Assembly (NCBI RefSeq): GCF_000143415.4
Contig: NW_003314277.1
Span: 445,183-509,182, forward strand
Direction of reading: 5' to 3'
Origin: Selaginella moellendorffii
Lineage: Eukaryota; Plantae; Lycopodiophyta
DNA: 64,000 bases
Below, in pieces: positions 2,520 through 34,271 of this stretch (position 1 is its first letter; the number at the start of each line of letters is the position of its first letter). A model generated the notes under the pieces. It ran no database searches and had not been told where the DNA came from. It saw nothing but the letters and a program-made list of their open reading frames with translations. The position numbers were made by a program, and so were the translations under genes.

Positions 2520-3863
2520 TTACCATACTTTCATTCTCTTTAGCTCGGGTTCAAGTGAAAGTGGTGATGGTGGCTCCTCTTTCTTTTTCACACTCATCAC
2601 AGCATTGGCCACTTCCTCCTCTGTGGTTCCAAACAGATCAGGCCTCGCCGGAGCCAAGCTCATGACGTTTCGCGCGATCTCCTCGTTGCTGGCAAGCGTG
2701 CCCAAGTTTCTCCGCTTGCTCATCATCCTTTCCTTCTCCTCCTTGAACTTGGGATGAATGAGCGAGATCCTCATGTGTTCCTCCATCTTGCTCACGGGTA
2801 TCAACTCTGAAGTTATCGGAGAGATGACCGTCTTGGTATGCGCATACTTGTCGCCCGTCTCGATCATCTCCTCGGGCCTCTTCCAGTTCCTCACAATCGT
2901 CATCGGTGGCTCTTCGCCCGCCGGGACAATCACTTGGAAAAACTCCTCGGCATTTGCTCTCCGCTCGTCGGGGAAATGATCCTCAAGCAACGTGATATCC
3001 ATCACCTCCTTGCGTCTGATCACGTCCATCTGCGTCATCGGAGACGGCAACGCAGCGTCCTCCTCGTCCACGAACTGGATCGTCTCCACCACCACAAACT
3101 CATGCCAGTCTATGCTGTTCATCCGCTCATCGTCTTCCTCGCCCTTGTCCCTCAACTCCTTTTGCGATTTCTCCCATTCGGCACGGTGGAGGCACCGCTC
3201 CAGGATAACGCTCTTGTCCAGCTCTCGCTTGAGCTTGTCGATCAGCGCCGTGGGAGCTTCCAGCAACTTGGAGTACGAGTGGCACAAGCCCGTGAAGATC
3301 TTGTGCAAGCTGCTCTCCGGTTTGAGGAAGCTAAACTGGAGGTTGTAGTGTTCCCTGCTTGCCAGTCCGGTAAGAAACTCGCTGCCATGTCTAGCCGCGA
3401 AGATCGCCGTGAGCTTGATGATGTCTACGTCCTTTGCAGAGAGACCCTCGGGGAAATCGAGAAGGAACTCCTCCGGCTCCGGCTCTTGCAGCTCCACCAC
3501 CTTGGAAGGCTCGGTGCTCTGCAAATCTTGCAGGAGAGTATGAAACTTTCGCGAGGATGGATGATCCTCCAACGGCGGTGGCTTGGATTGAGCTTGCACA
3601 GCAGCTGTGATCGAAGATGGAGCGCCGGAGCTCTTCGCTTCCGAGACTTTGTGCTGGTAATACGCGTGGTAGGGATCGGAGGGTTTGAGGAAGCTGAACT
3701 TGAGGATCTGATTGTCAGCCGTGATCTTGCGCTCGAAGTCGACACCATTCCTGGCCACAAAGTGCGCCGTCTTATCGACGATACATCTGATGCCAGGGGG
3801 AGGATGGATCATACCTGGCTGTGATCTCGAAGCGATCGACGCTGCCGCCATTTGGAAATCCAA
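2520..3863 (-). CDS. SF3A1: Splicing factor 3A subunit 1 (SF3a120/PRP21)-like; two SURP domains + PRP21 region, lacking C-terminal ubiquitin-like domain
   Basis: 447-aa ORF with IVDKTAHFVARNG (SURP1), DIIKLTAIFAARHG (SURP2), IDWHEFVVVETI and MEEHMRISLIHPKFKE. Confidence 0.85.
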   Translation of the reverse strand: MDFQMAAASIASRSQPGMIHPPPGIRCIVDKTAHFVARNGVDFERKITADNQILKFSFLKPSDPYHAYYQHKVSEAKSSGAPSSITAAVQAQSKPPPLEDHPSSRKFHTLLQDLQSTEPSKVVELQEPEPEEFLLDFPEGLSAKDVDIIKLTAIFAARHGSEFLTGLASREHYNLQFSFLKPESSLHKIFTGLCHSYSKLLEAPTALIDKLKRELDKSVILERCLHRAEWEKSQKELRDKGEEDDERMNSIDWHEFVVVETIQFVDEEDAALPSPMTQMDVIRRKEVMDITLLEDHFPDERRANAEEFFQVIVPAGEEPPMTIVRNWKRPEEMIETGDKYAHTKTVISPITSELIPVSKMEEHMRISLIHPKFKEEKERMMSKRRNLGTLASNEEIARNVMSLAPARPDLFGTTEEEVANAVMSVKKKEEPPSPLSLEPELKRMKVW

Positions 3864-4062: not shown

Positions 4063-6039
4063 ATGGATCCCGCCAGGAGGCTGAGAATTCTCGCGGTCCT
4101 GAGCTGCTGCTGCTGCTGGATTTCGTTTTGTTGCGGATCTATCCATCGCTACCAGCTGAGCCCCTTCAAGCCGTGGGACAATGGCTACACTTTCTTCGGA
4201 GGCAGCGAGGGATTGTATGCGAGCGGGAAGTCTCCGTCACATATCAAGTAAGATTCCTTCGCCCAATTACTTCTAGTGGAAGCATAGATTAAGCTTCTTC
4301 TTTCCAAGCATTCATAGATCTAGAAACTCTTGCCTTTTTTTGTTTGCATTTCCATCGTTAGTGTTTCTTTCTAGCATCCATAGCTCATTGGTCTTTGAGG
4401 TCTACACCTAGATGTAGAAAAAAGGAAGTGTAGAAATAGTGTTTCATTCTTCTTTCCTCAGCATCCATAGCTCATTGGTTTGATCTTGAAGTTAGAAAGA
4501 GAAAGACATTGTCGCCAGTAGTTTAACCTTTCGATCTTCGCAGCTTCAACGTCCAGTTTAGACGAACTGTGGAGTCGGCTGCGAGGCACGAGACGATGGA
4601 GCACAGCACAGGTCTAGTCGAGGCACTCCTTTTCACGCTCGAGGATCGTGACTTCATCGGAGTCACAAACTCCACCGGCGAGAGGATGCTGTGCTGCACT
4701 CCCGAGGCCTCCAAGCTCTCGAATTGCCGCATTGGCGAGGTGATACTTCGCAAGCGTGAAAACGGCTGGCCGAAGACCTTCCAGACGTCCTTCCAAGGCA
4801 ACAAGCTTGTAAACAGCTTCTCCGAGGACGTGAACGTGACCGAGACTGGGCTCTACACGCTCTACTTTGTCTTCTGCGAGCCACAGCTCCAAGGCTTGCA
4901 GATTCGCGGCAGAACGATATGGCAGAGTCCCACAGGCTTTCTTCCGGGGAGGATGGCGCCGCTCCTCAAGTTCTACGGCTACATGTCGCTCGCCTATCTC
5001 GTCCTGGGAGTGATCTGGTTCATCCAGTATGCGCGCTTCTGGAGAGATATCCTCCAGCTCCAGAACTGTATCAGCGTGGTGATCTTCCTGGGACACGCAG
5101 AGATGGCTTTGTGGTACTTCGACTACGCCAACTTCAATGCAACGGGGCGGAGGCCGATGGGGATCACCGCCTGGGCCGTGACCATCGGAGCCATGAGGAA
5201 GACGGTGTCTCGGCTCTTGGTGCTCATAGTTTCTATGGGATACGGGGTGGTGAAACCGACGCTGGGTGGGATCACGAGCAAGGTGTTGCTGTGCGGTGGG
5301 GCGTATTTCGTTGCGATCGAGACTTTGGAGCTGGCGGAGAACGTCCAACGAGTGGATGATTTTTCCAACAAGGAGAAGTTACTTCTGGTGCTTCCAGTTG
5401 CGATCATCGATGCGTTATTCATACTCTGGATTTTTTCCTCGCTGTCCAAGACTCTGGAAAGCCTACAGGTTCTTTCTCTCTTTTCTGTTTTCCTTCCTCT
5501 CGTTTTTGCTCTCAAGGTTTGGACTTACAGGCAAAGAAGCAAACCGCTAAACTGGAACTGTACAAGCGCTTCACCAATTTTCTTGCATTAGCAGTCATAG
5601 CATCAATAGTTTGGATTGGTTACGAGGTATGGCACGTAAGATAGCTTACAATCTCTGGAGGCTGACTCGAATTTTTATTTCCAGTTCTACTTAAAATCTA
5701 CAGAGGCATACAACATCCAGTGGCAAAATGCGTGGGTGGTTTTAGCGTTTTGGATAGTTCTGTCTTATGTCATGCTCTGCGTGATTTGCTACCTATGGAA
5801 GCCATCACAAAACTCCACAAGGTAACAAGATCATGTTTGTGTTATGTTGACTTGAGATTTTTTAAAGGTATGCCTACTCGGAGGAACTTGGCGAAGACTG
5901 TGATCCCGAGGAAGCAATCCAGCTTACTAGCAATATGGATTCATCAAATGGTCGCTTGAACGGTTCTGTAGAGAAAAAGAACACTGAGATAGACGTCTTC
6001 ACACTTGGAACAATTGGAGAAGAAGATAAACGAGACTAA
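4063..6039 (+). CDS. Lung seven-transmembrane receptor / TMEM87-GPR107 family protein (multi-exon)
   Basis: Signal-peptide exon 4063-4247, GT-AG intron 4248-4543 splicing in frame to the large exon (GFLPGRMAPLLKFYG, QNCISVVIFLG, VSMGYGVVKPTLG, WIFSSLSKTLE), further short exons, ending EEDKRD* at 6039. Confidence 0.9.
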
Positions 6040-6318: not shown

Positions 6319-7164
6319 ATGAAGTGTAAACTCTTAATAATTTTTATTATTTTGTTAATAAAGCTCAATTTTATTATTGCACCTAAGAAGTATACTCCTA
6401 CAATTGGAAGACCAGGAATTTTAAAATTTCAAGATATTACTAAAATAATTGCAGGGGTTAATGGTCTGCTATATAAACTTGATCATAATGGTAAATATCC
6501 TATAACTTATTCAGATGAAGATAGAATATTAACATCTAAAGGATATGTTGATTTGATAGTTAAAGTTAAAGATCAATGTTTACTCAAAGAAACAGTTACA
6601 GAAGTTGTAGGAAATAACATCAAACGTGGAATTGATCGACTTTTAGAACTTAGTAAAGATTATTTATATGAATCACTTTCAGACTATTTTGAAAAAGAAA
6701 GTCAAAATTATCTTATAAGATATAAACTAGATACTACATCAGACGAATTAACATATCAAAATAACATTACAAATTTTGACAATATAAATGGTTGTTATAT
6801 TAGCATAAGTACTTTATTTTCTGATTCAACTTTACATGTTAATAATTTCTTAATATCTCAAAATGGTAAAAATATGTTATTGTTAGAATACAGTTGTAAA
6901 TTAGTCTTATATTCATTAAACCAAAAAATTTGGGAATCAGAACTTAAATCAAATAGTTTTGGTAATTGTTTTCTAATTCTTCAGCAGGATGGCAATTTGG
7001 TTGTTTATTCTAATAAAAAGGCTTTATGGGCTACAGATAAATATTGTAATAACTGTAAATTGTCAACACTATTTTCTGTTCAAAATAACTGTAATTTAGT
7101 GGTCTACCTATCAAAGTTTCCTAATAATGTTTTATGGGCATCAGATAAATTATGTCTACATTAA
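6319..7164 (+). CDS. Secreted protein: signal peptide + unassigned ~130-aa domain (possible barnase/RNase Sa-like fold) + bulb-type (GNA) mannose-binding lectin domain; paralogue 1
   Basis: Intronless ORF from ATG 6319 with hydrophobic N-terminus and lectin motifs LILQQDGNLVVY..ALWAT and VQNNCNLVVY..VLWAS. A colinear intact paralogue lies at 28610-29476. Confidence 0.8.
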   Translation: MKCKLLIIFIILLIKLNFIIAPKKYTPTIGRPGILKFQDITKIIAGVNGLLYKLDHNGKYPITYSDEDRILTSKGYVDLIVKVKDQCLLKETVTEVVGNNIKRGIDRLLELSKDYLYESLSDYFEKESQNYLIRYKLDTTSDELTYQNNITNFDNINGCYISISTLFSDSTLHVNNFLISQNGKNMLLLEYSCKLVLYSLNQKIWESELKSNSFGNCFLILQQDGNLVVYSNKKALWATDKYCNNCKLSTLFSVQNNCNLVVYLSKFPNNVLWASDKLCLH

Positions 7165-7659
7165 ATATAATAAAGATTAATCTTTAAATTTTAAATATAT
7201 AGATTAAGGTTTATAATTTTAAATATAAAAAACATTATCAAGATTTACTGCTATTTTATAATAACTATTTTTTATAATATGTTTTATTTATATATTTCTG
7301 CTTTGTGAAAAATCTTTGTGTCATAAGGCTTATAAAATTTGATATCCTAATGGTTTAGTTATAAATGGGTTTGTTTTTGGCTTTTTTATAACTTATTATA
7401 TTCAACTTAATTTTAATATTTCTATATTTATATGTAACAATAGCACAAAAGTTTTTTAAAAATAATTTGGATTTAAAATTAAATGTATATTTAATGTAAT
7501 TCTTGATTATTAATATATAATTATTTTTTTTGTCCAATTATGATTTACTTTGGTTAATATTATATTAATCAGTTTTACAGCTTTCAATAAGTATTTATTA
7601 AAAGAGATAGTTGTGTTAGTTGTGTATTTTTATGTATATATAAACTATAAGGCCTGTAA

Positions 7660-7660
<1 letters not shown>

Positions 7661-7690
<30 letters not shown>

Positions 7691-7745
7691 CATATATACA
7701 TATATACATATATACATATATACATATATACATATATATATATAT

Positions 7746-7814
<69 letters not shown>

Positions 7815-8043
7815 TATATACATATATACATATATATATACATATATACATATATATATACATATATACATATATATATACATATATACATATATATATA
7901 CATATATACATATATATATACATATATACATATATATATATATACATACATACATATATATATACATATATACATATATATATACATATATACATATATA
8001 TATACATATATACATATATATATACATATATATAGATATATAT

Positions 8044-8120
<77 letters not shown>

Positions 8121-8127
8121 TATATAT
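7661..8127. repeat. Compound (TA)n/(TACA)n microsatellite with 20-bp higher-order unit
   Basis: Pure TA runs flanking repeated CATATATACATATATATATA units. Confidence 0.97.
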
Positions 8128-8138
8128 AACCTTGCTTA

Positions 8139-8963: not shown

Positions 8964-10289
8964 CAATTCTTCAATTTTCCATTTAATCTTTTCTCTTTAC
9001 TTTTTGCTCTTTTTTTAACTTTTTTTTTTATTTGAGCCACCTTATGTTTTTAATGTTTCTTCCTTATCTACAATGTTTTCTTCTTTAACACATCGATTAT
9101 TTATTACTTTTATGATTCTCATTCTTAGCTTAGTGTTGAGTTGAGTGTTTTCTATCCTCTTTATACTACTCTAAATATTGAGTATAAATATGTGTATAAA
9201 GTTAAAAATTCTATTTTTGTTTTGTTTGCAAAGTTTTTGATTAGTTCTAATGTTAAGTATTCTTATATTCCAAAGGTTGAATCACTTTGGCCAAAATTCC
9301 AAGTTGAATATGTGTACCCATTTGTAAATATTATTTTGTTATTTTGCTTTACTGTTGCTACTAAGGAGTTTATATATTCCCTTGAGAGTATAGATTTTCT
9401 ATTGATTTTCCTGTCTTAATTGGTTAATTGTGTATTGAGGAGGTTGAGCGATATGAATCTTTTGTTTATATTGTCGTAGCTGAAGTATTTTATGACATGA
9501 AGTCTTTTGTTTTCCAAACTTTGAGCATATGTCTTTTTTATTTCCTTATTTTTGTATTGATAGCTATTGAAAATTCCTTTTTTATCCACTTTTTCTTTTT
9601 TCATAATGACTCTTTCTCAATTTTTCTCACTTTCTCATTTTTGCTTTGACACTTCAAACTTTTTTTTCTTTAAAAGAGGGGGTAGAGGGGATGGACAATA
9701 ATTCAACCCCAACAATAGAGTGAGGACAAGTAAATATGATAGTGGAGCAAAGATGAATGACATAGATTGTGGAGTGAGGATAAATATAACGAGTCCAAAT
9801 GAAATAGCCCCAATATAGTAAAGCCAAACGAATGCAATAATAGAGTGAAAAGGAGTATAATAAGAGTTGGTGTTTCAAAATTTTTTTTCCTTCAAAGGGA
9901 TAAAAAGGATGTAGAGGATAAATGGAGTGAATCCAACCTCCCATGTATAGTGCTAAACAAAGATGAAGGTTGATATTGACTAAAGGGAATACGTAAAGGC
10001 AAGTTCTATTTATGATCATGAGTTTGAGTTAATAGTTATTTCAAAAGATTATCAACGAATTGATTTAAAGGCAAAATGTATCATTTGTTGCAATAGCATT
10101 TTATGGATTATAATAGTTTTTAAAGTCTCTTTTTTTAATTCAAAGTTATGGGTTCAAAGTTAGTTTAAACATTTGGTAATTGTATACAGAGTTGTAATTA
10201 GTTCATTGAGATTCTATAATCAATTGATAGTTATCGCATGGCTTTAAGTTTTGTTTCAATCATGGTTGTCAACAACTACATTAGTGGTT

Positions 10290-11875
10290 ATACATGCATG
10301 TGTACGACCATTGCCATAAAGAATAAAAATTAACTTCACCGCACGACATAAGTGTAGACAGCAATGTGTGGCAACAAGTCGAGCAATAAAAGATAAACTT
10401 AAACTTGTATCAACCAATACAGAGAAAATAATAGGAAACCTTTTGTTATAAAAATGAGCTTGGAAAGAAACACTTGATGAACTGGTGCTGAGTGAACCCC
10501 TTGATGATACTCCCGAAAGAAAGATGAAGGGGTCCCTAATTTATTCATGTAAAGTCCCTCTGTTACTCACATGACTCCTCGTTTCCCAGATACATCTTAG
10601 TGTCCAGACTTTCCACTACAACAACACCAACAAAACGTTATTGATACCAAGGTCTCCACCTAGGAAATGGAAGTTGCCAATTTGGAAAATGCCGACAACG
10701 CTGATAAATGTAATCAACTTCATTACACGCCTAGCAGCGAATATCATGGCCACAACCACGTCCTCGCCCTTGTCCTTGAACTCGAGCAATAGCAGCATCA
10801 ACCTCTATTGGAATAGAACCATCGCCCATAAGAAGTGGAGTTGAAAGAAGTGCAGCGAAAAGTGGAAAATGCAACGTCTTATAATGTTGTGCCAAGCGAA
10901 AAGCATCGTCAAAGGTGGCTAGAGCAAGTGTATGCACAAGTTTAACAAGATCTTGACAAAGTGTTGACCACAACATTCCTAGCTTAATCTACTTTGACAT
11001 ATTTGGCTCTGCATGAAACAAGAAGCTTCAGAAACAAATGCCAAATTGCATCACTGACTCAGATGGCCCTTGACGAAGACAATGCGACTATTGGAAGGCA
11101 TCATCACAATCATCAACATATCCGAATGCAAGTTTAAAGACATCCGGGAGAACACTCCAATCCCCACGAGTGGCTACATTCAAACCATTGTACCACTGCA
11201 ACACCATCTTTTGGAGATACATGGGAAATTCATGCAAATGCCAAGTATCATCTCAAGAATGATATATAATAATCACCATGAAGTGATAGAACCAATGGTA
11301 TACATCATCCCTAGGATTCCCATTAGGGAATTTCAACTAAATATGAGGATTGGCACCAAGAGTAGGAGGAGATGTACCATGTGTCATGAATACCACTATC
11401 AATTGAGTTTGGTTGTTCAATTGTAATCGCATCCAAAGTAAAAGGAGGAGGAGACTATTGCTTTGCCATGAAGATGAATGAAAATGAAAGAGCAAAAAAA
11501 GATAAATGAAAAAAAGCTAAAGGGAAAGGGAGATTTAAACAATACAAAAGCTAAATCTAAACTAAAATCCTAAAAATAAAAAAAAACAAAAGAAAGAAAA
11601 TGGAAAATGCTAAATTTAGATAATGCAAAAGTTAGATCTAAACCAAAATTCAAAATCCAAGTAGTCCTTAAGGACAATCAAAAGTGCCCTTCATTTCCAT
11701 TAATGTGAGTGTATGGAATATAAAAAGGGAATGCAAAAAATGTGCATATCAATTAGCTCAAAAACCCTCATATACAGAAGCAAGTGGTCCAGATTGAAAT
11801 TAATTTGATGGTCACCAAAATCCCATTATGCTAATATTAGTATACGGCATTATAGCTATACACTTGAACCTCACA
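10290..11875 (-). mobile_element. Truncated second copy of the Ty3/gypsy family (5' LTR 11704-11875, PBS, gag-protease remnant)
   Basis: Colinear with 22592-24203; gag remnant LCQDLVKLVHTLALATFDDAFRLA; TG...CA LTR; PBS reverse complement GTGCCCTTCATTTCCATTA. Confidence 0.85.
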
Positions 11876-13914: not shown

Positions 13915-15708
13915 ATGGGACTTTTCACTTTCTCTAGCATGCTCACTCTCTCGATTGTTTTCTTTGCAGATGTTCTTGCGCTACCTCCGCCAGCAGTAAC
14001 TTGCAGATCTGGAAACTCAAACTGCACGATCTCTGGAACTTACGGGACATGGCCCGATCGATCCACTTGCAAGGCTGCTCAAGTTTTCTATCCGGCGAGC
14101 GAGCAGCAGATCGTCGACGCCGTAGCATTTGGAGTCCGAAACAACATGAAGATGAAAGTCGTGACGAGGCTGTCGCACAGCATACCGAAGCTCGTGTGTC
14201 CCGGAGGCGATCAAGGACTCGTGATCAGCACGAAGAACTACAGCAGCGGCATTGTCATCGACAGGGAAGCCATGACGGTCACGGTTGACAGTGGTGTGGA
14301 GCTTCGCAACTTTGTGGACACCCTCGCAAGTTCCCAGCTCGCTTTTCCACAATCTTCATACTGGAGCGGCGTCACGATCGGTGGCCTCCTCAGCACCGGT
14401 GCTCACGGAAGTTCTCTTCGAGATCTGGGAAGTGCTGTTCACGAGTACGTGACGAGCATCAGGCTCGTGGTTCCGGCATCGCCAGCAGAGGGATACGCGA
14501 AAGTTTTAACTTTCACCCAAGCTAGCGAAGATCTGGACGCGGTCAAGGTTTCTCTCGGAGTTCTGGGCGTGCTGTCCAAGATCACACTCAAGGTGGAGCC
14601 GATGTTTAAGAGGTCCGTGACCAACACCATGAGGTCGGACAGCGATCTGGAGGATCAAGTCGCCACTTTTGCAAATGGTAACGATTATGGTGACATAACT
14701 TGGTATCCTTCCATGAACCAGGCGGTCTACCGGATCGATCAACGGGTTCCAAGCATTGTTCCCGGAAATGGAGTGAACGATTTCATCGGCTTCCAGCCGA
14801 CAGCAGTGTTAATCTCTCAAGCTACGAGAACTACAGGTAATTTGTTGTTCTTTATAGCTCTTTTGACTTTGTCTTTGTTTGCTGCGATAGAAAGAGTTTT
14901 TGAGTTCACGAGAGACACGCAAGGTACGTGTAACAGAGCTCGGCTACAGGCATTCACGCTCTGGACGACTGGCTACGGGCTCAAGAACAACGGCGTTCTC
15001 TTCACTGGTTATCCGCTGATTGGAAACCAGAACAGGATACAAACCTCAGGAACTTGCTACAACTCTTCCAGCTCGCTCTTCACTTGCCCATGGGATCCCA
15101 GCATCGATGGCTTGTTCTTCCACCAGACAACCATCTCGATCGCCCTCGAAAGATCCAGGGACTTCATACTCGACGTGAAGAGGCTGAGAAACGCGACTTC
15201 GAACGGTCTGTGCGGTCCCGACGGCTACAGTGGATTTCTAATGCGCTACGTGAAGAAATCCAGCGCTTACTTGGGAAAGCCCGAGGATTCCGTGGACATC
15301 GACGTCACTTACTATCGAGCGGATGACGCAAACACTCCGAGGCTCAACGAAGACGTCCTCGAAGAGCTCGAGCAAATGGCCGTTTTCAAGTACCAGGGAA
15401 CTCCACACTGGGGGAAGAACCGCAACGTTGCCTTCGTCAACGCTTCCAGAAAGTATCCAAACCTTCCAAAGTTTTTGGATGCGAAGAAGAGGCTGGATCC
15501 CAATGCCTTGTTCTCGAGCGAGTGGTCGGATCTGGTTCTCGGAGTGACGACCGCTGGATTGACCAGCGACAAGGATCACTGCGCTCTAGAGGGTCTTTGC
15601 ATTTGCTCCAGCGATCGACATTGTGCTCCGGAGAGGGGCTACTTTTGCCGGCCAGGACGAGTGTTCCAGCAAGCCAGAGTGTGTCGCTTCGAAGAACGTC
15701 TTGTTTAA
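13915..15708 (+). CDS. GULLO: Plant L-gulonolactone oxidase-like FAD-dependent oxidoreductase
   Basis: SHSIPKLVCP, TIGGLLSTGAHGS, PHWGKNRN, and Cys-rich C-terminus CALEGLCICSSDRHC. A probable 54-nt in-frame intron lies at 14837-14890. Exact start uncertain. Confidence 0.9.
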   Translation: MGLFTFSSMLTLSIVFFADVLALPPPAVTCRSGNSNCTISGTYGTWPDRSTCKAAQVFYPASEQQIVDAVAFGVRNNMKMKVVTRLSHSIPKLVCPGGDQGLVISTKNYSSGIVIDREAMTVTVDSGVELRNFVDTLASSQLAFPQSSYWSGVTIGGLLSTGAHGSSLRDLGSAVHEYVTSIRLVVPASPAEGYAKVLTFTQASEDLDAVKVSLGVLGVLSKITLKVEPMFKRSVTNTMRSDSDLEDQVATFANGNDYGDITWYPSMNQAVYRIDQRVPSIVPGNGVNDFIGFQPTAVLISQATRTTGNLLFFIALLTLSLFAAIERVFEFTRDTQGTCNRARLQAFTLWTTGYGLKNNGVLFTGYPLIGNQNRIQTSGTCYNSSSSLFTCPWDPSIDGLFFHQTTISIALERSRDFILDVKRLRNATSNGLCGPDGYSGFLMRYVKKSSAYLGKPEDSVDIDVTYYRADDANTPRLNEDVLEELEQMAVFKYQGTPHWGKNRNVAFVNASRKYPNLPKFLDAKKRLDPNALFSSEWSDLVLGVTTAGLTSDKDHCALEGLCICSSDRHCAPERGYFCRPGRVFQQARVCRFEERLV

Positions 15709-15749: not shown

Positions 15750-16260
15750 GCAAGTTTCTGGGACGGAAAAATGTCTGCGCTTGCATAAGATGGCTTTGTG
15801 GTACTTCGACTCCTTTGATGCTTGCTAAATTTTCGTCTTGGTGCTCATAGTTATGGGTGTCCTGAATTTGCTCGATCACCACTGAGCCTAGCAGCATCGC
15901 TCGAGTGATTGATTGCTGGACTGCTGTCCCTATGTCCCGGGATACTGGGTGGTGAAGCCAGATCATGATCAAGGTCTTGCATTTTCTTGTGACTGAGACT
16001 TTGGAGCTGGCAGAGAATGTCCAACAAGTGCATAGTTTTCTTTTTCGAACAAGGAGAAGTTACGTTGAGTTCCACGACTTCTGGATTTTTTTCCTCGCTG
16101 TCTGCAGGGTCTTTCTCATTTTATTCTCCCTCGTTTTTCCTCTTATAGTTTGGGATTTAAAGGCAAAGAAACAAGCTACTAATCTAGTGCTGTAGAAGCA
16201 CCAATGCTCTTGAATTTAGCATGAATAGTTTGGTCACAAGGAGGAGGCTGATTTGAATTT
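15750..16260 (+). pseudogene. Decayed fragment of the Lung-7TM gene
   Basis: Matches 5100-5680 in pieces (AGATGGCTTTGTGGTACTTCGAC, GAGACTTTGGAGCTGGCAGAGAA, AGGCAAAGAAACAAG) with deletions. Confidence 0.8.
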
Positions 16261-19135
16261 GTTAAATCTGTGCATGACTTTAAAGGTGTAGCACCTTGGA
16301 TTAATCTTGTGTTTATAAACTATAAACTTATAATTTATAAACATAGATGGCTATATAAAATACTTATGGTGGTAGCAATGGTAATGTAATATCATGTTAG
16401 TCACTTTTCTTTTTCTCTAACATCAATTTTTTTTCACAAGAACAAGAATACACTTTGAAAACTCTAATGTTTCTGGATGGTGTTGAGGGAAGATAAATAA
16501 GCATCCATAAATACATCTTTAGTTTTATAGGGCATCCAAATGAATAACATAGAATAATTAATTTATAGAATGGAAAGATTCGTAAATTTAATATGGAAAT
16601 AGAGGGAAGATAAATAAAGTGATTTGTGAAAGGTATATCTTTATAAAGTATTTATTTATAAAATTATTTTAATATTGTAAATGCTTGGAATATGGAAAAG
16701 GAATACAGAAAATGTGCATATGAATTAACTCATATAAGAGCGAGTGGTCCGGATTGAAACCAATCCAATAGCTACCAAAATCCCATTACACTAATATTAG
16801 TATACGGCATTGTAGCCATACATTTGGCACTCACATCATTCCCTCATCTTGAAATAATAGAAGACCATTAGGGTTCTTTTGTAGATGGGCCGGGATCTGG
16901 AGGAACATCAGGAGGAGCTATTGGCAGATCTGTAGGTGGTATTAACTACTTCTGATCCCTTTGTATAAAGCATTTTAACTGTTGCATATGCACAAACTTT
17001 GGAGGATTGGTTTGCTAGACGTCATGCTAAACCTCATAAACTTGTGGTCCAACTTGCTACAATACCTGACACGGTCCTTTCCACTAAGCAAGGAACCCTT
17101 TAAATAAACCACATACCATAAGATGGGGAAAACGGACTAACATCAAATCATTCACTTTGTACTCCGCAGGTGGATGATAATGGGAGTTGTAGTGCCGTTG
17201 TTGTCCCACTTGTACACGGCCTAAGTGTTCGGCAGACCTTGCTCGAACAAGTGGAAGAATGCTTGTCAAATATTGATCCTATGACCTAGCATCGATAACT
17301 TGTGGCAATCGCAAAGGTAAACCCAGCTCCGTTGATAATATTAGATCATGACCATAAAAGAGTTTATATGGTGAAACACCAACAGAACTCTACACCCCTG
17401 TGACATATGCATACCAAAGAGATAGCAAATAACCATCCCAATCTGAATGCTGAAAGTTCACATACTTCGCGATCATCCCTTTGAATGTCTGAACGAGCCA
17501 TTTCACCAGACAATTTGATTGTGGATGATAAGCACTCATGAAAGTGTGGCGTATTCCCAACCTAGACGTCAAAACATGAAATGCCTCAGCTATAAATGTA
17601 GGACCATTATCCAAAAGAATCCATTCTGGACAAAAATGCTGGAACACCATTCGATTAAAGAGGAAGTATCTAATAACAGTGCAGATGCACTAGCAAGAGC
17701 ACTAACTTCCACCCAATGAGTCAAGTAGTCAAAAATAATAATAACATACTCATTGCCAACAGTCGATCGTGGAAAAGGTCCCATAAAATCAAATGCCACC
17801 AACTCAAACGGATGGGAAACTGCAATTGACTCCAACCGTTCTTCCACGGCATGAAGGGGAATATTATAAGTTTGGCACCAAACGCAGCTATGCACATACT
17901 AGATAATATCACATTGCATCTCCAACTAATAAAAAGACCTGCGCAACTTCTCAGTTGCACGACGATGTCCCATATACCCATCTAGAACAGGAGAATCATA
18001 GTAGACATAGAGAAACCGCAAAATAAACACAGAAGGCACCACCAGCCATAAATAATCATCAGGATCCATCCCCACAAAATAAAGAAGGCCATTTTCAAGG
18101 CGATATTGAGAATGTAAATGCCGGAAAGGCAAGTCGTCAGTAAATGATGCAGAATTCTCAAACCCATCGCGAAGCCTTCGAATCCACGGCTCAATCTTTT
18201 GAGCCTCACAAACCTCATCAAAAGAAGGTAAATCTTGTTCTACGCCTTGTGGACATTAAACGTCAAGTACAATAACGCCGACGGCACAAAATCCTTGTTT
18301 AGAAAATCCATAGATGCTGGAACAATAGACTCATTAAAAACATGAGAAGAGAGTGGAGAAGGAAGAGGAGCTTGAGAAAGGGCATCAGCATCAGCCATAG
18401 AACTCCCTAGGCGATGAATAACATCAAAATCATATATTTGAAGCTTCAAAGCCCACCGAATAATACAACCAACTAGGTTCTTCCGCTTTAATAATAAAGT
18501 AACGATAGCATGGTCACATTCAAGTAATGTCCAAGAACCATGTAGATATGCATGAAGTTTCTCGAAACCCTAAACTGTTACTAAACACTCATTCTCTATT
18601 GTGGAGTAGTTCATCTTTGCTGGTTGTAATGTACGGTTTATATATGTAATAGGATGGTGCTGACCAGGCACACTCGAGCTCTTTTGCATCAACACACCTC
18701 CAAAACTAATGATAGAAGCATCCACGCACAAAATAAAAGGTGGAGTGTAATTAGGATATGCCACAACCAGAGGAATTGTCAATAGCTCTTTGAAATCCAT
18801 GAACGCCCACTCACAATTTGGAGACCAAATGAAAGATGATGTTGATGACTTCAACAACGTTTGTAACAGTGTAGTGCAATAAAAAAGATGATCCACAAAA
18901 CAACCGAAATACTGCACCTTGCCCAGGAAGCACTGCACATCATTCACACACTTCAGAGTAGGGAACTTTAGAACAACCATAAATTTGTCAAGATCAACTT
19001 GCAAACCCTCACGAGAAATATGGTACCCAAGATAAGTCATGTCTTTGGACCCAAACACACACTTCGACCGCTTCAGCTTTAAACCAACATCCCGTAGCTG
19101 ATCTAACACTTTACAAATATCATGAATGTGCTCCT

Positions 19136-20956
19136 TGTAAGCGACTAATTTTTCCATTCTACTTTAGTCACTTAACCACACCTCCGACCACTTGGAGGAG
19201 TCTCATTCACAACCTCCATAAGTCCAACTCAGGACTTGGGGCTTGCTAGCCCCGAGAATGGCATCCATGCCACTCAACCTTAGCACTTGGTCCAAGTGCT
19301 CCACGTGTCCGATCCCATGATCGACACCCCAAGGTACCACTAACGTATCGGCCCGTTACGCTAAGGCCATGCCCAATTACCTTGGTCACACTGGTGGTCC
19401 AACACCACTTGCATTCCAATCCTGTCTCTCAAAGACTGGGTCATCCGTCCATGAGGGATCATCCCAGATCCACTCCTTAACATCCTTAGGATGCCTACAG
19501 ACATGGGGAATAGCCTTCCCCAATATCTCTGTTCCGGTCCCCACCAAGTCCCTTTTTTGTCCTTGGCTGTGTTCGCCAACACTGCCACTGGATCAAGGCC
19601 CACCGGCCCGACCACTAAGTCCCACTATCCTCGAGGACCTCCTCACTGTGTGACTGTGTCCTTGGTCACCCCACCAGAGGGCTACCCCTCTTCCTTTCCA
19701 CAGTCTGGGACTTTGGGACACCATTTCGGAACACCGTGGCCTTACGCGAGCCACCTGGGTACTCTCCCCACCTTTCGCCTTTAGGTGCTCTAGCCATGGG
19801 CTTAGAGCGAGGTTCCGTTGAGCCATGCCTGGTATCCAAGTAGGTAGTGCCACCCACACTTGGACTGGGAGCATCGGCCAGTCGATCTCCCGGGGGAACT
19901 AGAGCCGGCTCTTGAACACTTCACCAAGCTACCCCGCTTGTCGGTCCGTGTTCACTCTAGTTTTGGACTTCCCAGTGGGCAGCTCAACACCCAACACTGG
20001 GTCCGGCCTTCCTGGGCCAAACTGGCCTTTCCTGGCCAAACTGGCTCCACTGCAGTCCTCCCCCTACTATACTTTTGGAGCTCACCAAACCCCCCAGGGT
20101 CTGGGAGACGAACGCTTTGGGCTTTCACCCTCTCAGGCTTCGGACTCGGACTCGGACTCGGACTCGGACTCGGACTCGGATTCGGACTCGGACTCGGTCT
20201 CAGTCCTGATCTCGGTCTCGGTCCCGGTCTCGGTCTTGGTCCCGGTCTCGACTTCGGACTCCATCTCGGGTCCATCTCGGACTCCACCTCGGACTCCATC
20301 TCGGGTCCTTCTCGGACTCCATCTCGGACTCCATCTCGGACTCCATCTCGGGTCCATCTCGGACTCCATCTCGGACTCCATCTCGGGTCCATCTCGAACT
20401 CCACCTCGGACTCCATCTCGTGTCCTTCTCGGACTCCATCTCGGACTCCATCTCGGACTCCATCTCGGGTCCATCTCGGGTCCATCTCGGGTCCATCTCG
20501 GACTCCATCTCGGACTCCATCTCGGGTCCATCTCGGACTCCATCTCGGGTCCTTCTCGGACTCCATCTCGGACTCCATCTCAGACTCCATCTCAGGTCCA
20601 TCTCGGGTCCATCTCGGACTCCATCTCGGACTCCACTTCGGACTCCATATCGGACTCCATATCGGACTCCATTTCGGGTCCATCTCGGACTCCATCTCGG
20701 GTCCGCCTCGGACTCCATCTCGGACACTTCCACGTGTCATGTGTTGGTCCTTTCGGGTCCGTTTTTGGAGCCTCGCTTATTGCTCGCTTCGTGCTCATTC
20801 CTCGAGCACTTCGTTAGGGGTTCCACTCCCGCTCTCGACCTTTCAAGGCGGAGCTTTTAGTCCAAACGTGTTACGCTCGTTTGGCTTTCGCTTCGGCCAC
20901 TACCACGTGGCGCCCCTCCGGCTCCACTTTGGGGCCTAGGGATTTTGTGTCTCACA
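19136..20956. mobile_element. 1.8-kb solo LTR inserted in the gypsy RT domain
   Basis: Starts TGTAAG, ends CTCACA, with perfect 5-bp TSD CTCCT (19131-19135 / 20957-20961). RT sequence resumes on both sides. Confidence 0.85.
20138..20726. repeat. Minisatellite of 6-bp (CTCGGA), 12-bp (CTCGGACTCCAT) and 11-bp (CTCGGGTCCAT) units inside the solo LTR
   Basis: Directly visible tandem units. Confidence 0.95.
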
Positions 20957-25254: not shown

Positions 25255-25730
25255 CAAGGTTAGATTTGAAGAAATAAGAGTTCAAATTGCGTGGTGAAGC
25301 ACTTATCTAGTTCCAGTTTAGCGGTTTGCTTCTTCGCTTGCAGGTCCCTCCCATGAGAAAAAAACGAGGGACCAGGAGAAAGAGAGAAAGAACCTGTAAT
25401 CTTTCCAGAGTCTTGGAGTATTAAAAACGTATCAATGTTCGCAACTGAAAACACAACAAGCAACTTCTCCTTGTTGGAAATATCTTCCACATTCTCCGCC
25501 AGCTCCACGCCCCACCGCATGGCAAGACCTTGCTCGTGATCCCACCCAGGTCGGCTTCACCACGCATCACATAGAAACTATGAGCACCAAGAGCCGAGAG
25601 ACCTTCTTCCAATGGTCACGGCCCAGGCAGTGCCTGCGTTGAAGTAGGCATTTAACTTTGTTCCAGAATCCTGAGAACAAAACTCTGCCCATCAGAAAAA
25701 CAAACTTGGCATCATTTGCATCTGCATCAG
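25255..25730 (-). pseudogene. Decayed Lung-7TM fragment (inverted)
   Basis: Translates in pieces to GGITSKVL, ELAENVEDISNKEKLLVVF and AKKQTAKLEL. Confidence 0.8.
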
Positions 25731-26049: not shown

Positions 26050-27785
26050 AAAGCAAGGACGATCTCCCCAGGTGCGATGGCTTCGGTGGCGAACCGGCCG
26101 AGGCCACCGGAGTCACCGCGGAGAAGCTTCACTGGCCCGACAAACTCCGTGAAAGTTGGAACGTCCTCGCTCTTGCAGCCTAGGCTCAGGTAGCGGTGGA
26201 GGTCGTCAGAGATGTCCCGTTCTTCGCTCTTGTCCATGAACTCGATTATGAGCCCGTTGATCGCTGCTGCAGCAGAGCTAGCTTGTACGCCTGCACTGCG
26301 TCTTTGTATTTGAGCATGCCGTGGAGAGCTCGCCCCTTCCTCGTCAGCAACTTCACTGAGAGGACGTTCTCCGTGGCATTCGTGAGCGCCAGTGCCTTCT
26401 CCGCGTTCTGAAGGGCACAGAAGAAGTTCTCGAGCTCAAGGTGGCAGTGGGAAGCGTTTCCGAATGCCAGAAGCTTGTCCCTCTCGTTGTCAGCCTTCGA
26501 AATGCTCAGGTTGTAGAGCTCTATAGCCGCCAGGTATTGCTTCCTGTGGAAGTGCTGGTTGCCCAAGCTGCGAAGCTCGCTGGACGCTTTCTGGCCGAGT
26601 TCGCGCATGGTAGTCGGGAAGCAGGAGACGATCTCTACGTTTCCTGAGCATCGAAAGTTCACATACAAATGATAAAACACAATAGATTTACTTTACCTGG
26701 ATTATCAACAACGCAACGTCCTTCCAGCCGAAGGTGCTTTTTCACTGTTATCGATGCGCCCTTGGGATATAGTGCTTCCAGTTCCTCCAGGGAAGAGTCG
26801 CTTCGAGCTACAAATAGAAGACGAACTTCGATCGGTCCGGACAGATAGAGGATGAAATCGTTGCTTCCGCCCAATTTGGATCCCTCGATTGTCCCACTCA
26901 GCGCCAGTTGCTCTTCTCGCAGGCGATTCATGCCGCCAAGCTCAAAATTTATCACCTTTGGGGCCCTCGTGATCAAGCTATGGAGTCGTTGTCGTTTTTG
27001 AGCCTCTCGTGAGATGCCAGGAAATAAGTCCTGCCCAAGGGAAAGAAGTTGAATCGAGCTTTAAACAGTCTTCACTAAACTCACCTCCTGGAGCTCCGGA
27101 ATGCCCTCCCAGGATGCAGGCGCACTATCACTGGTCGAGGCGCCCTTCCGGAAGCAAAACACAGCAACAAAAGGAATGACACGCTCGGACTGGTTGTATG
27201 TTACCTCGTTCTTTTCTTTCCAACGATCGTCCGAGAACAAGTCGTCAATGATCTAACAATAGTCCACACGAAATCCAGTGTGCTTAGACGAAAGAATAAA
27301 ATACTAGAGTCGGTTTGTACCTCCTGGTCGACGAAGTCGCGAATTCTAGAGAGCGCAACCTCCATGTTTTTGCGAATTTTTTGTACACCCTAGGTGTAAC
27401 AAAATGCTTCTTAGAAGAAGTTTGAAGCTTTCAGAGAGTACCTCGCATAGAATCTCGGATGCCGAGACAGCGAAATCTATCATCCGGAGCTGACTTGGCT
27501 GTGGATTCGAAGGAACAAAGCAAGAATCTGAGAGAGAAATGTGAGGAAACCGAGAAAATACCCTGTCATCGACCCCCATTTGCATCATCAAGTCAACAAG
27601 CTGCGATGCCGGTGCCCGGGACGAAGATGCGCCCTTGGAAAAAAGCTCCATCAGGGAATCACGCGACAAGCCTGTGCCGAATCGAAATATACCGCAATCG
27701 ATCGCCCCGCCTCCGAAATATCGCCGCGGGAGGCACTAGACGCTGCCGGATCCGGCACAGAAGCATTCCGGGAGCGCCTAGACAT
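26050..27785 (-). pseudogene. TPR-SET family copy C, frameshifted and 3'-truncated at the start of the SET domain
   Basis: Same exon series as 37873-40739; frameshift giving LLQQRSTGS*; homology stops after GEIVL. Confidence 0.85.
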
Positions 27786-27852
27786 CGTATCTGCAAGCAC
27801 AGGATCTCGCGAGGACGAAGAGGGGGACGCCGTATTACCTTCTCTTGCTCGC

Positions 27853-28142
27853 NNNNNNNNNNNNNNNNNNNNNNNNNNNNNNNNNNNNNNNNNNNNNNNN
27901 NNNNNNNNNNNNNNNNNNNNNNNNNNNNNNNNNNNNNNNNNNNNNNNNNNNNNNNNNNNNNNNNNNNNNNNNNNNNNNNNNNNNNNNNNNNNNNNNNNNN
28001 NNNNNNNNNNNNNNNNNNNNNNNNNNNNNNNNNNNNNNNNNNNNNNNNNNNNNNNNNNNNNNNNNNNNNNNNNNNNNNNNNNNNNNNNNNNNNNNNNNNN
28101 NNNNNNNNNNNNNNNNNNNNNNNNNNNNNNNNNNNNNNNNNN
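27853..28142. other. Assembly gap (290 N)
   Basis: Run of n. Confidence 1.
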
Positions 28143-28609: not shown

Positions 28610-29476
28610 TTAAAATGAACATAGTTTATGGTTGAATGTACCTGATGCCCACAAGATAGTATTAGGAAACTTTGATGAATAAACTACTAAATTACAGTCA
28701 TTTTGAACAGTAAATAATGTTGATAATATACAATTTCTACAATATTTATTTGTAGCCCATAAATGTTTTTTATTAGAATAAATAACTAAATTACCATCAT
28801 ATTGTAATATTAGGAAACAATTATCATAACCTTTTGATGTAATTTCTGATTCCCAAAGTTTTTGCTTTAATGAATATAAAACTATCTTACAACTATATTC
28901 CATCACTAAAACATTTTTACCATTCTGAGAAATTAAAAAATTATTAATATGTAAAGTTGAATCAGAAAATAAAGTACTTATGCTAAGATAGCAAGCATTT
29001 ATACTATCAAAACCAATATTTTGACTTTGATATATTAGTTCATGTGATGTACCATCTAGTTTATATCTTATAAGATAATTTTCACTTTCTTTTTCAAAAT
29101 AATCTGAGAGTGATTCATATAAAATATTTCTACTAAACTGTAAAATTCGATCAATTCCACGTATAATATTATTTCCTATAATTTCTGTAGATTTATCCTT
29201 TAGTGAACATTGATCTTTAACTTTAATTATCAAATCAACATATCCTTGAGATGTTAGTATTCTATCTTCATCAGAAAATGTTACAGGATAATCATAATTA
29301 TGTTGAATTTTATATAATAAGCTATTAACACCCGTAATTATTCTAGTAATATCTTGGTATGTTAAAATTCCTATTCGTCCAAGTTTAGGTGTATATTTTT
29401 TAGGTGCAACAACAAAATCTAGTTTAATTAATAAGATAATGCAAAGAATTAAGAAATAAAACTTTAAAAAGGCCAT
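28610..29476 (-). CDS. Secreted RNase-like(?) domain + bulb-type lectin; paralogue 2
   Basis: Intact ORF from ATG 29476, colinear with 6319-7164 (roughly 70% aa identity by eye); motifs QYDGNLVIY and QNDCNLVVY. Confidence 0.8.
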   Translation of the reverse strand: MAFLKFYFLILCIILLIKLDFVVAPKKYTPKLGRIGILTYQDITRIITGVNSLLYKIQHNYDYPVTFSDEDRILTSQGYVDLIIKVKDQCSLKDKSTEIIGNNIIRGIDRILQFSRNILYESLSDYFEKESENYLIRYKLDGTSHELIYQSQNIGFDSINACYLSISTLFSDSTLHINNFLISQNGKNVLVMEYSCKIVLYSLKQKLWESEITSKGYDNCFLILQYDGNLVIYSNKKHLWATNKYCRNCILSTLFTVQNDCNLVVYSSKFPNTILWASGTFNHKLCSF

Positions 29477-29654
29477 GTTTACTTCTCCCAAAAAACTTTA
29501 TTTTAATGTTAGCTTTTTCTTACTTTTTGTTTTTATTTATAACGATTTTTTTTATGCTAACTTTAGAGAGAAAAAACATATATATAACCCTAAAAAATCC
29601 CTACCTAAAACATCATGTTAAGCAAATCTTCACTAATGCATTTCACTACTGGAA

Positions 29655-30110
29655 GTTGTAGGCCTCTGTAGATTTAAGTAGAACAATATCCTTATGTGCC
29701 ATACTTCGTGACCAATTATACAAACTATTCATGCTATGATTGCTTAGAGCATTGGCAAAGTTCTTGTACAGAAAGCCCCAGGGAACAGAGAAAGAACTTG
29801 CAAGCTTTCCAGAGACTTCGACGGCAAGGAAAAAATCCAGAGTATGAAATAGGCATCGTGGAACTCAAAGTACCAAAAGTAACTTCTCCTTGTTGGGAAA
29901 ACTATGGAGTTGGACCAGTTCCAAAGTCTTGATCTCGCCATAAAATATGCCCACCGCACAGCAAGACCTTGATTGTGATCCCATCCAGCATTGACTTCAC
30001 CATCCCGTATCCCATATAATCTATGAGACCGAAGAGCCGAAAGACAAAAATCTAGCAAGCACCACAAAGCCATCTTAGCAACCACAGGCATTTCTCCGTT
30101 TCTAGAAACT
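29655..30110 (-). pseudogene. Decayed Lung-7TM fragment upstream of lectin paralogue 2
   Basis: Reverse complement matches 5100-5710 (AAGATGGCTTTGTGGT, GGATACGGGATGGTGAAG, TTCTACTTAAATCTACAGAGGC) with deletions. Confidence 0.8.
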
Positions 30111-31502: not shown

Positions 31503-34271
31503 ATGTCTAGGCGCTCTGTGCCGGATCGGGCAGCGTCTAGTGCCTCTGGCGGCGATATTTCGGAGGCGGATCGATCGATTGTGGTATATTTCGATTCGGC
31601 ACAGGCTTGTCGCGTGATTCCGTGATGGAGCTTTGATTTCTAAGGGCACATCTTCATCCGGGGCGTCAGCATCACAGCGTGGCGACTCGATGATGCAGAT
31701 GGGGGTCGATGACAGGGTATTTTCTCGGTTTCCTCACATTGCTCTCTCAGATTATTGTTTTGTTTTTTCCTTCGCCAAGTCAGCTCCGGATGACAAATAT
31801 CTTTGTCTCGGCATCCGATATTCTACGCGAGGTACTTTCTGAATGCTTCAAACTTCTTCTAAGCATACACCTAGGGTGTGCAAACACTTCGCAAAAACAT
31901 GGGGATTGATCTCTCCAAACTTCCAGACAATGAGGTACAAGACTCTAGTATTAAAGCTTTTATTCTTTCGTCTGATCACGCTGGCTTTGGTGTGAATTAT
32001 TGTTAGATCATTAAGGCCTTGTTCTCGGACGATCGCTGGAAAGAAGTGCGAGAAAAGAACAAGGTAACTTACAACCAAGTGTGACCAAATTTTTCACTGT
32101 GTTATTGCTGTGTTTTGCTTCTGGAAGGGCGCCTCGACCAGTGATAGTAAGCCTGCATCCTGGGAGAGCCTTCCGGAGCTCCAGGAGGTGAGTTTACAGG
32201 AGACTGTTTAAAGCTCGATTCAACTTCTTTTGTGCCCAGGACTTGTTTCCCGACATCTGTCTACCAGAGGCTCAAAAACGACAACGTCTCCATAGCTTGA
32301 TCACGACCAAGGCTGATAACTTTTGCGCTTGGCGACATGAATCGCCCGCGAGAAGAGCAACTCTCTCCATCGGCGCTGAGTGGGACTATCGAGGGATCCA
32401 AATTGGGCGGAAGCAACGATTTCATCCTCTATCTGCCCGGGCAAATCGAAGTTCGTCTTCTTTTTGTCGCTCGAAGCGACTCTTCCCTGGAGGAACTGGA
32501 AGCACTATATCCCAAGGGAGCATCGATAACCGTGAAAAAGCACTTACGGCTGGAGGGGCGCTGCGTTGTTGAGAATCCTAGTAAGTAATCTACTGTTGGT
32601 TTTATCATTCGTGTCATGACTTTCGAACGGTGCTCAGGAAACGTAGAGATCATATCCTGCTTCCCGACGACCATGGACGAACTCCACCAGAAAACATCCG
32701 GCGAGCTCCGCAGCTTGGCTAACGAGCACTTCCACATGAAGCAGTGCCTGGCGGCTGTGGAGCTCTACGACCTGAGCATTTCGAAGGCTGACAATGACAC
32801 GGACAAGCTTCTGGCTCTCGGCAACGCATCGGAGTGCTACCTTGAGCTCGAGAACTTCTTCCTTGCCCTTCAGAACGCGGAGAAGGCTCTGGCGCTCGCG
32901 GATGCCACGGAGAACGTCCCCACCTCGGTGAAGTTGCTGACAAGGAAAGGGCGAGCTCTCCATGGCATGCTCAAATACAAAGATGCAATGCAGGCATACA
33001 AGCTAGCTCTCTCTCGCTGCAGCATTGAGCAACGGGCTGGCATCATCAAGCTCATGGACAAGAGCGAAGAACGCGACATCTCCGACGACCTCCACCGCTA
33101 CCTGAGCCGAGGCTGCAAGAGCAACGACGCTCCAACTTTCCTGGACTTTGTCGGGCCAGTGAAGTTTCGGAGCCGTAGAGATGGTGGCATTCGCCTATTC
33201 GCCACCGAGGACATCGAGGCCGGGAAGATCGTCCTTCTGAGCAACGCACTGGGCTACGTCCGTGACATGTACACTGAGCATGCCGTCGTCGACGTCTACG
33301 TCAAGCTCGTACAAGCCGCACTGAAGTCTCCGAGAACTTCGCTGCAGCTCCATTACCTTTGGAGGAAGATTTTCGACGAGGATAAGGCTGGGATCCCACC
33401 AATGCGAGTGTTCATGCCAAACTCCGATATTGACTGGACAGAGAAGCGTGCCGTGGAGACGGACAAGATCAGGCACATTCTCGAGCACAACTTCAAGCTG
33501 GGCTTTGTCGGGGGCGTGTGGACGCTGCCGGGGTTCATCGCACACAGCTGCAGGGGAAACTTATGCGTGGTGCAAGTTGGACCCGCCAAGATCTTCCGGG
33601 CGACTTTGGACATCGAAAAGGGAGAGGAGCTCACGTACTCTTATGCTCCCTCTTTCGAGATCCTTCCTGTGGGCCTCCGCCAAGAGTTTATCAGCTGGTG
33701 CCGGTGCAGGCGGTGCACGATCGAGATGCTCTACCGGCGATGCGGCGGTCCCTACGAGAGCCTGTGCCTTCGTTACCAAAAGCATCTGAGTGAGTACAGG
33801 AGAGTCACCGAAGTGAAAACCAAGAACAGGCGACAGTTCATGGTAGAGCAAGAGCTCGTCCAGGTGGCAATAGACTCAGAGGAGATCCTCAAGCACACGA
33901 ACGAGAGCACGACGAACAAGACGGTCCTACGCATGTCCTTCGCTTCAGCGTACCTCCTCTACTTTCTCTACAAGGATTCTGCCCGCCAGGAAGCCGTCGA
34001 CGTGATGCCGAAGGATAGCGAGTTCTGCATGGATTTCATGAACGCTACCGTGACGAACCTCGAGAGCTTGGAGACGCTCACAGCAGGGCTTTTTCCCATG
34101 GCGTTCTACCCGACGATGACGAAGAAGAAGGAGGACCTCAGGACCATGGCGGATTGGTGCATCGACTACTGCTTCCAGATGCGCTACGGAGCGTCGATGA
34201 CGAAGAGCGCGAGGGTCAAATTCCTGAAATGGTTGCAGAGCGATGAGCCGGACAAAGCCAGGCGTGCCTGA
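31503..34271 (+). pseudogene. TPR-SET family copy A: large TPR-SET exon intact, 5-bp deletion frameshift in exon 7 (~32306)
   Basis: Exon-by-exon match to copy B. ACGACCAAGG versus ACGAGAGCCCCAAGG shifts the frame. The terminal exon (~32638-34271) is open with TPR and SET motifs, so a shorter product is possible. Confidence 0.75.

Follow-up and report, generated by a model that had tools for sequence, protein, structure and literature searches.

A duplicated, AT-rich Selaginella moellendorffii gene missing from the public annotation joins a GNA-type lectin to an N-terminal domain without detectable relatives

A 64,000-nucleotide stretch of the genome of the lycophyte Selaginella moellendorffii (RefSeq assembly GCF_000143415.4, contig NW_003314277.1, positions 445,183 to 509,182; hereafter the window) contains a complete single-exon gene, copy A, whose product combines an N-terminal hydrophobic targeting sequence, an N-terminal domain under constraint and without detectable relatives at the sequence level (the N-domain), a variable linker, and a C-terminal GNA-type lectin domain (Table 1). 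We consider this to be, more likely than not, a functional and lineage-restricted S. moellendorffii gene, with two paralogs per haplotype, encoding a chimerolectin of the secretory pathway. The original prediction for the locus had described a chimeric protein composed of an undescribed domain and a GNA lectin, and to this extent it holds: the gene is real, it is under selection, and its N-domain matches no described family.

The G+C content around copy A is only 17–27%. The stop-free run at copy A extends over 284 codons; when this AT-rich stretch was simulated 2000 times with a first-order Markov model, the longest run had a mean of 62 codons and a maximum of 143. The window also holds a second, paralogous complete coding sequence (CDS), copy B, and the similarity between the two extends from the signal sequence to the stop codon, ending at the CDS borders. 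The window is identical to the corresponding part of scaffold GL377581.1 of assembly GCA_000143415.2 (offset 5938 bases), and both copies have counterparts on the syntenic scaffold GL377566.1, namely A' (L009:12321-13166; 281 aa, 97.2% amino acid identity to copy A) and B' (L001:9446-10312; 288 aa), with all four open reading frames (ORFs) intact and open. The S. moellendorffii assembly is known to hold both haplotypes, and we accordingly take GL377566.1 for the second one, though it may alternatively be a diverged segmental duplicate. An organellar origin or misassembly of copy A was considered and rejected, as it is contiguous without a gap with GC-rich nuclear genes and is present on both scaffolds.

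The pattern of substitution is that of a maintained coding sequence. Copies A and A' differ at 13 of 843 nucleotides and copies B and B' at 24 of 864, in neither case with an indel, whereas the 1-kb flanks show 77–92% identity between the scaffolds, and each flank alignment contains between 5 and 139 gap columns. Between the paralogs, the ratio of nonsynonymous to synonymous substitution rates (dN/dS) is 0.25–0.35 and the proportion of nonsynonymous differences (pN) lies below that of synonymous ones (pS; p=1e-8 overall). The same is true of the N-domain (aa 22–139; pN 0.136 vs pS 0.280, p=0.004) and the lectin domain (pN 0.120, below pS, p=3e-5) taken separately; purifying selection thus acts on each of the two domains, and since the N-domain is constrained about as much as the lectin, it is more than a spacer. 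The duplication history points in the same direction. A live GOST/TMEM87B-like gene precedes copy A, and a decayed GOST/TMEM87-like 3' fragment precedes copy B, with a matching remnant on GL377566.1 (L001), indicating that the duplicated unit comprised the GOST 3' end together with the lectin gene. The GOST piece has since decayed (G+C 0.42 vs 0.54 in the live gene) and the co-duplicated lectin CDS has stayed open, which supports a live gene. A search for transposon or repeat borders around copy A brought up nothing beyond a TA/TACA microsatellite and short repeats ascribed to chance; the duplication is segmental. Further decayed fragments of the GOST 3' half lie among the SET-domain genes of the window (25290-25631 on the minus strand, 34626-35077 on the plus strand, and 15962-16039); these scattered pieces are traces of repeated segmental duplication, and only the one next to copy B retains an adjoining lectin gene.

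The C-terminal domain is a GNA-type lectin by sequence, motifs, and predicted fold. The Pfam B_lectin profile (PF01453) matches copy A with E=1.6e-7 (32.2 bits, the gathering cut-off being 32.4) and copy B slightly above that cut-off at 32.5 bits. A phmmer search of PDB recovers about 30 GNA-family chains below 1e-3, with gastrodianin (1xd6) at the top (E=7e-15) and the monocot lectins spanning E=7e-15 to 1e-9. The AlphaFold2 (AF2) model of this part has 11 strands at moderate confidence (block-mean predicted local distance difference test [pLDDT] about 52–76), and in a Foldseek search with this model all 39 matches at E<=1e-3 are β-prism II lectins, the best being gastrodianin 1xd5 (template-modelling score [TM] 0.74, root-mean-square deviation 2.2 Å). 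An intradomain cysteine pair (C193/C217) aligns with the cysteines of gastrodianin and GNA and is kept in all copies. The lectin called in the original prediction is thus confirmed, but the QxDxNxVxY sites that it listed are intact only in part: a single canonical site out of three is found in copy A and two are found in copy B. Mannose binding would be predicted from these motifs.

Preceding these domains, the first 21 residues of copy A consist of two lysines followed by 17 hydrophobic residues that close in Ile-Ile-Ala (Ala21), with a putative cleavage site, read by eye, that has Ala at –1, Ile or Val at –3, and Pro at +1. This segment, in which n-, h-, and c-regions can be made out, has an equivalent in copy B and is the least conserved part of the protein (dN 0.24). 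The signal peptide of the original prediction is therefore recognizable by eye as a hydrophobic targeting sequence, while its cleavage is uncertain. The mature protein would retain eight conserved cysteines (C87, C159, and six in the lectin domain), an even number that fits a secreted, disulfide-bonded protein. The sole N-glycosylation sequon of copy A (NIT at aa 149) falls within the linker, where the AF2 pLDDT is also at its lowest (24–29). Based on these features, the copy A product is predicted to enter the secretory pathway and may be secreted.

The N-domain stands apart from all described families that were searched. Residues 22 to ~160 match no Pfam family at E<=10, B_lectin being the only Pfam match in the whole protein, and searches of the N-domain against Pfam, NCBIfam, PADLOC, and PHROGs at E<=10 yielded only noise at 12–14 bits. 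Among these, the matches to FadL (0.028), NucT (0.053), and an anti-termination Q-like family (0.09) were rejected as chance at such scores, as were the PDB sequence and profile matches to IolI, a designed DPBB protein, and mannitol-1-phosphate dehydrogenase (0.04–0.1). Against 1.84 billion cluster representatives, phmmer returned a single match for the N-domain (P0003, E=1.8e-4), which we rejected as compositional because it runs through five copies of a helical, ankyrin-like repeat. Pattern scans and tblastn likewise confirmed no N-domain relative in IMG/VR, JGI metagenomes, or GTDB genomes, and a derivation of the N-terminal half from a degenerate second lectin domain was rejected at an hhalign probability of 0.1%. 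The AF2 models, built from an alignment with two sequences only, are of low confidence (pLDDT 39 for the isolated N-domain and 42–61 in the full-length run) and all-helical, with helices at about aa 37–56, 73–89, and 94–140; a Foldseek search with the low-confidence isolated model found nothing below E=1. A hydrophobic-moment scan partly disagrees with these models, showing strand-like alternation at aa 50–89 and 130–139 and helix-like periodicity at aa 36–49 and 90–129.

The public annotation either passes over this gene or cuts it short. In GCA_000143415.2 no gene is called at copy A or at A', that is, on either scaffold, and on GL377581.1 nothing is annotated between the GOST gene and the WD40 gene, where copy A sits. 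B' is annotated only over its last 103 residues, as a partial hypothetical protein (SELMODRAFT_76109; EFJ36847.1). This public model of B' shows 93% identity to copy B and 71% to copy A over the lectin domain; the model stops at those 103 residues, whereas the open frame in the underlying DNA begins with an ATG, spans 288 codons, and also encodes the targeting sequence and the orphan domain. The locus tag SELMODRAFT_76109 is not mentioned in the literature searched, and exact-sequence look-ups with the lectin and L-gulonolactone oxidase-like ORFs of the window matched no record. The gene lies in AT-rich intergenic DNA and shares its composition, a probable reason for its having been overlooked by gene finders that were trained on the GC-rich genes of Selaginella. 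An assembly gap (a run of N at 27853-28142) lies 0.47 kb downstream of copy B, and the 3' context is incomplete there.

Taken together, we propose that the N-terminal hydrophobic sequence would bring the protein into the endoplasmic reticulum, from where it may be secreted or delivered to the vacuole, unless it stays anchored with most of its mass on the non-cytosolic side, its folding probably being stabilized by disulfides among the eight conserved cysteines, including C193/C217. The β-prism II domain would then bind mannose-type glycans through one intact pocket in copy A and two in copy B, and the orphan domain of ~120 aa, carried on a flexible linker of ~20 aa, might contribute a second activity. 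Antifungal gastrodianin and other lectins of the GNA family provide an analogy from which defence or recognition would be the default expectation for its function. Because the N-domain is constrained, we think it more likely to be an effector or assembly module than a propeptide that is removed.

Several readings of the N-domain have to be set against this proposal. The most specific of them, put forward in the original prediction, is that it is a diverged ribonuclease or pseudo-ribonuclease of the barnase/RNase Sa-like (BECR-fold) type, forming with the lectin an A-B toxin in which the latter serves for delivery. The strand-like segments next to helix-like ones in the periodicity scan leave room for an α + β fold, and an N-domain constrained about as strongly as the lectin is what one would see for an effector. 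However, no BECR-fold protein was recovered at E<=10 from Pfam, NCBIfam, PADLOC, PHROGs, or PDB, and neither was a ribonuclease of any family at that threshold from Pfam, NCBIfam, or the PDB sequence and profile searches; the 1.84 billion representatives contributed none of either. The predicted models, helix-only and of low confidence, gave no PDB match below E=1 and no ribonuclease among the 50 best Foldseek matches listed, a result that at this confidence weighs neither way on the fold. The ordered matches to microbial ribonucleases, drawn by eye, were reproduced by no search, and they relied in part on peptides of the other gene: copy A reads TYSDEDRIL and RGIDRLL, whereas the TFSDEDRIL and RGIDRIL quoted for it occur only in copy B, so that two genes had been merged. 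Even in that alignment both catalytic positions are substituted by Asp. The resemblance to barnase, RNase Sa, and RNase T1 (PF00545), no member of which was returned by any search, comes down to a size of ~120 aa and secretion. As for the A-B toxin, the type II ribosome-inactivating proteins (RIPs) of the ricin type offer an analogy without evidence, in that a glycan-binding module is joined to another part; Pfam at E<=10 shows neither a RIP nor a ricin-B domain in the Selaginella protein. We accordingly regard the ribonuclease proposal as highly improbable. That the N-domain is instead a propeptide or chaperone-like segment, cut off in maturation to leave a GNA-type lectin of ~12 kDa as the working molecule, appears quite unlikely. 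Many GNA-family lectins are made as precursors and then processed, and the flexible, poorly conserved linker is a plausible processing site; but the N-domain is as constrained as the lectin, its ~120 aa are long for a propeptide, the conserved Cys87 and Cys159 point to a folded unit linked by disulfides, and the propeptides of monocot GNA-type precursors are, to our knowledge, C-terminal rather than N-terminal. We would only tentatively entertain, as an unlikely case, that the N-domain represents a new fold or effector family that was fused to a GNA lectin, whether it arose within AT-rich lycophyte DNA or was acquired from an AT-rich donor not yet sampled.

The base composition raises the further questions of whether the gene is foreign and whether it is alive. 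The G+C content at the three codon positions (GC1/GC2/GC3) is 0.34/0.27/0.14 in copy A and 0.32/0.29/0.10 in copy B, as against a GC3 of 0.61–0.79 in six neighboring genes (1-2016, 2520-3863, 4569-5591, 13915-15708, 32616-34271, and 39051-40739) and codon-usage means for S. moellendorffii of 55.8/42.5/60.7%, with GC3 mostly between 0.35 and 0.95 (PMC11276031). Barring microsatellite and gap artefacts and one borderline frame (9654-10019; 121 codons, GC 0.34, no Pfam match), the two copies are the only ORFs of at least 90 codons in the window with less than 36% G+C. These values, well below the genome means at all three positions, along with the lack of introns in the copies and of a plant homolog of the N-domain in the protein databases searched, would accord with horizontal transfer of the gene or its N-terminal half from an AT-rich donor, such as an amoebozoan, an AT-rich bacterium, or a large DNA virus, followed by duplication. 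Against this, no donor-like relative was found in viral, metagenome, bacterial, or archaeal contigs or in the protein collections, and in PDB, itself biased towards monocots, the lectin domain finds its best matches among plant lectins, which score well above bacterial ones. The viral contigs hold no close relatives of the lectin domain, and three metagenomic B-lectin proteins (P0001, P0002, and P0005) were rejected as leads to a donor, as they match over the lectin part only (29–39% identity) and come from bacterial-looking contigs, with a chaperonin gene beside P0002 and ParA-, Fic-, and BrnT-family and ankyrin-repeat genes beside P0001. Moreover, the local non-coding DNA is as AT-rich as the lectin genes and the dead GOST fragments drift AT-ward, so that AT-biased mutation acting in situ over a long enough time can account for the composition. 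We therefore judge a transfer unlikely and weakly prefer a long residence in AT-rich DNA without a GC-maintaining force over an AT-rich donor. The same intergenic composition, together with the lack of a gene model for copy A and of any transcript-derived protein in the collections searched, could be taken to mean that the ORFs are unexpressed, non-functional relics that happen to be still open. This is very unlikely, given that four copies have remained open where chance frames average 62 codons, that indels between the scaffolds are confined to the flanks, that pN is significantly below pS, and that the co-duplicated GOST piece did decay.

Even so, a functional secreted chimerolectin has to be reconciled with a number of observations that weigh against it. 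The level of dN/dS denotes only moderate constraint; the N-domain is absent from the JGI and RefSeq XP models in the protein collection, and the want of any gene model at copy A could mean low or no transcription. The GC3 of 0.10–0.14 lies far outside the genome range and is left unaccounted for by the explanation we favour. At the level of the protein, the Pfam score of copy A falls 0.2 bits short of the gathering cut-off; two of its three sugar sites are altered, so that binding may be weak or its specificity changed; and the Pro at +1 of the putative cleavage site makes an uncleaved signal anchor possible.

Table 1. Positions of the two lectin genes, the parts of copy A, and the associated GOST sequences in the window
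Feature	Positions	Strand	Remarks
Copy A, complete single-exon CDS	6319..7164	+	281 codons (281 aa + stop); ATG at 6319, TAA at 7162-7164
N-terminal hydrophobic targeting sequence, aa 1-21	6319..6381	+	Cleavable signal peptide or signal anchor; read by eye
Orphan N-terminal domain, aa 22-139	6382..6735	+	~120 aa; one conserved Cys (C87)
Variable linker, aa 140-160	6736..6798	+	Ends in conserved Cys159; most substitutions between paralogs
GNA-type lectin domain (B_lectin, β-prism II), aa 161-281	6799..7161	+	Six conserved Cys; Pfam, PDB, Foldseek
Lectin site I, degenerate (EYSCKLVLY), aa 190-198	6886..6912	+	From alignment to GNA and gastrodianin
Lectin site II, canonical (QQDGNLVVY), aa 222-230	6982..7008	+	Columns invariant among aligned relatives
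Lectin site III (QNNCNLVVY; Asp to Asn), aa 255-263	7081..7107	+	Canonical in copy B (QNDCNLVVY)
Copy B, paralogous complete CDS	28610..29476	-	288 aa + stop; 73% aa identity with copy A
Live GOST/TMEM87B-like gene	4063..6039	+	280 bp upstream of copy A; 100% identity to XP_002971001.2
Decayed GOST/TMEM87-like 3' fragment	29631..30045	-	Directly upstream of copy B; tblastn with P0006, 34-69% identity

Among characterized proteins, the closest in its lectin part is gastrodianin (GAFP; 1xd5, 1xd6), the antifungal monomeric GNA-type lectin of Gastrodia elata, which shares the β-prism II fold, the QxDxNxVxY motif, and the cysteine pair at 32–34% identity over ~100 columns. Gastrodianin is, however, a single domain of ~112 aa, whereas the Selaginella protein has an N-terminal extra of ~140 aa, four more cysteines in its lectin domain, and one to two intact sites. 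The same MMBL/B_lectin fold is seen in the lectin-like bacteriocins pyocin L1 and putidacin L1, comparable by analogy only, but the pyocins consist of tandem lectin domains without a separate effector. In terms of architecture, the Selaginella protein belongs with the plant chimerolectins, in which the GNA domain, ubiquitous in Viridiplantae, is joined to kinase, glycoside hydrolase, peptidase M11, or EGF domains (Van Holle and Van Damme 2019, PMC6362431). The recombination of a GNA domain with another module is common to both, but the Selaginella protein differs from the chimerolectins described in that its partner domain is of no described family, its lectin is C-terminal, and its base composition is aberrant. 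GNA chimerolectin architecture is thus known; what is new here is the undescribed partner domain, the absence of the gene from the annotation, and the anomalous composition.

The neighbors of the lectin genes are plant genes and code for a pentatricopeptide-repeat protein with an E motif, a SURP/PRP21 splicing factor, the GOST/TMEM87-like protein, a WD40 protein, an L-gulonolactone oxidase-like protein, and SET-domain proteins. The TA/TACA microsatellite, 0.5 kb downstream of copy A (~7640-8130, ~500 bp, G+C 8–12%), forms near-perfect long inverted repeats (84–86% complementary, ~220 nt per arm). The AT-rich island that separates copy A from the WD40 gene also includes an A-rich stretch (10300-11500; AT skew +0.2, G+C ~0.40–0.44) that contains no annotated gene and only short ORFs without a Pfam match. 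The L-gulonolactone oxidase-like gene is single in the window (13915-15708) but is present on GL377566.1 as two adjacent copies (L001:16635-18226 and 18485-20226), which show 94.6% and 97.8% identity to that of the window. A tandem family with tetratricopeptide-repeat (TPR) and SET domains occupies 32616-34271 and 39051-40739 and, by DNA similarity, also 26055-27852 and 49201-50341; the order of its copies on GL377581.1 differs from that on GL377566.1. An ORF at 18570-19157 on the minus strand codes for reverse-transcriptase and RNase H-like domains (RT_RNaseH_2, E=1e-19) and is a fragment of a plant retroelement of the long terminal repeat (LTR) type. Two GC-rich ORFs, 54256-55455 (399 aa) and 60319-61797 (492 aa), have no Pfam match, and the former sits in a stretch of strong positive GC skew (~0.2).

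In the genome of a model lycophyte, a conserved and duplicated gene has thus been missed or clipped by the public annotation, apparently since its codons resemble intergenic DNA, and the AT-rich islands between the GC-rich genes of Selaginella may hide more such genes. Its N-domain is constrained, although about 15 billion predicted proteins offer no relative of it, and may therefore represent a lineage-specific fold or activity that is linked here to a well-understood sugar-binding module. A gene with a GC3 of ~0.1 in a genome with a mean of 0.61 also offers a test case for the part played in the upkeep of G+C by expression, recombination-linked biased conversion, and codon selection, and bears on whether foreign or newborn genes escape the GC-maintaining force. 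If the N-domain were indeed a new fold or effector family, spikemosses would own a private, two-module, glycan-targeted defence protein that annotation has overlooked, and extreme AT codon usage would flag a class of hidden genes in the AT-rich islands of Selaginella.

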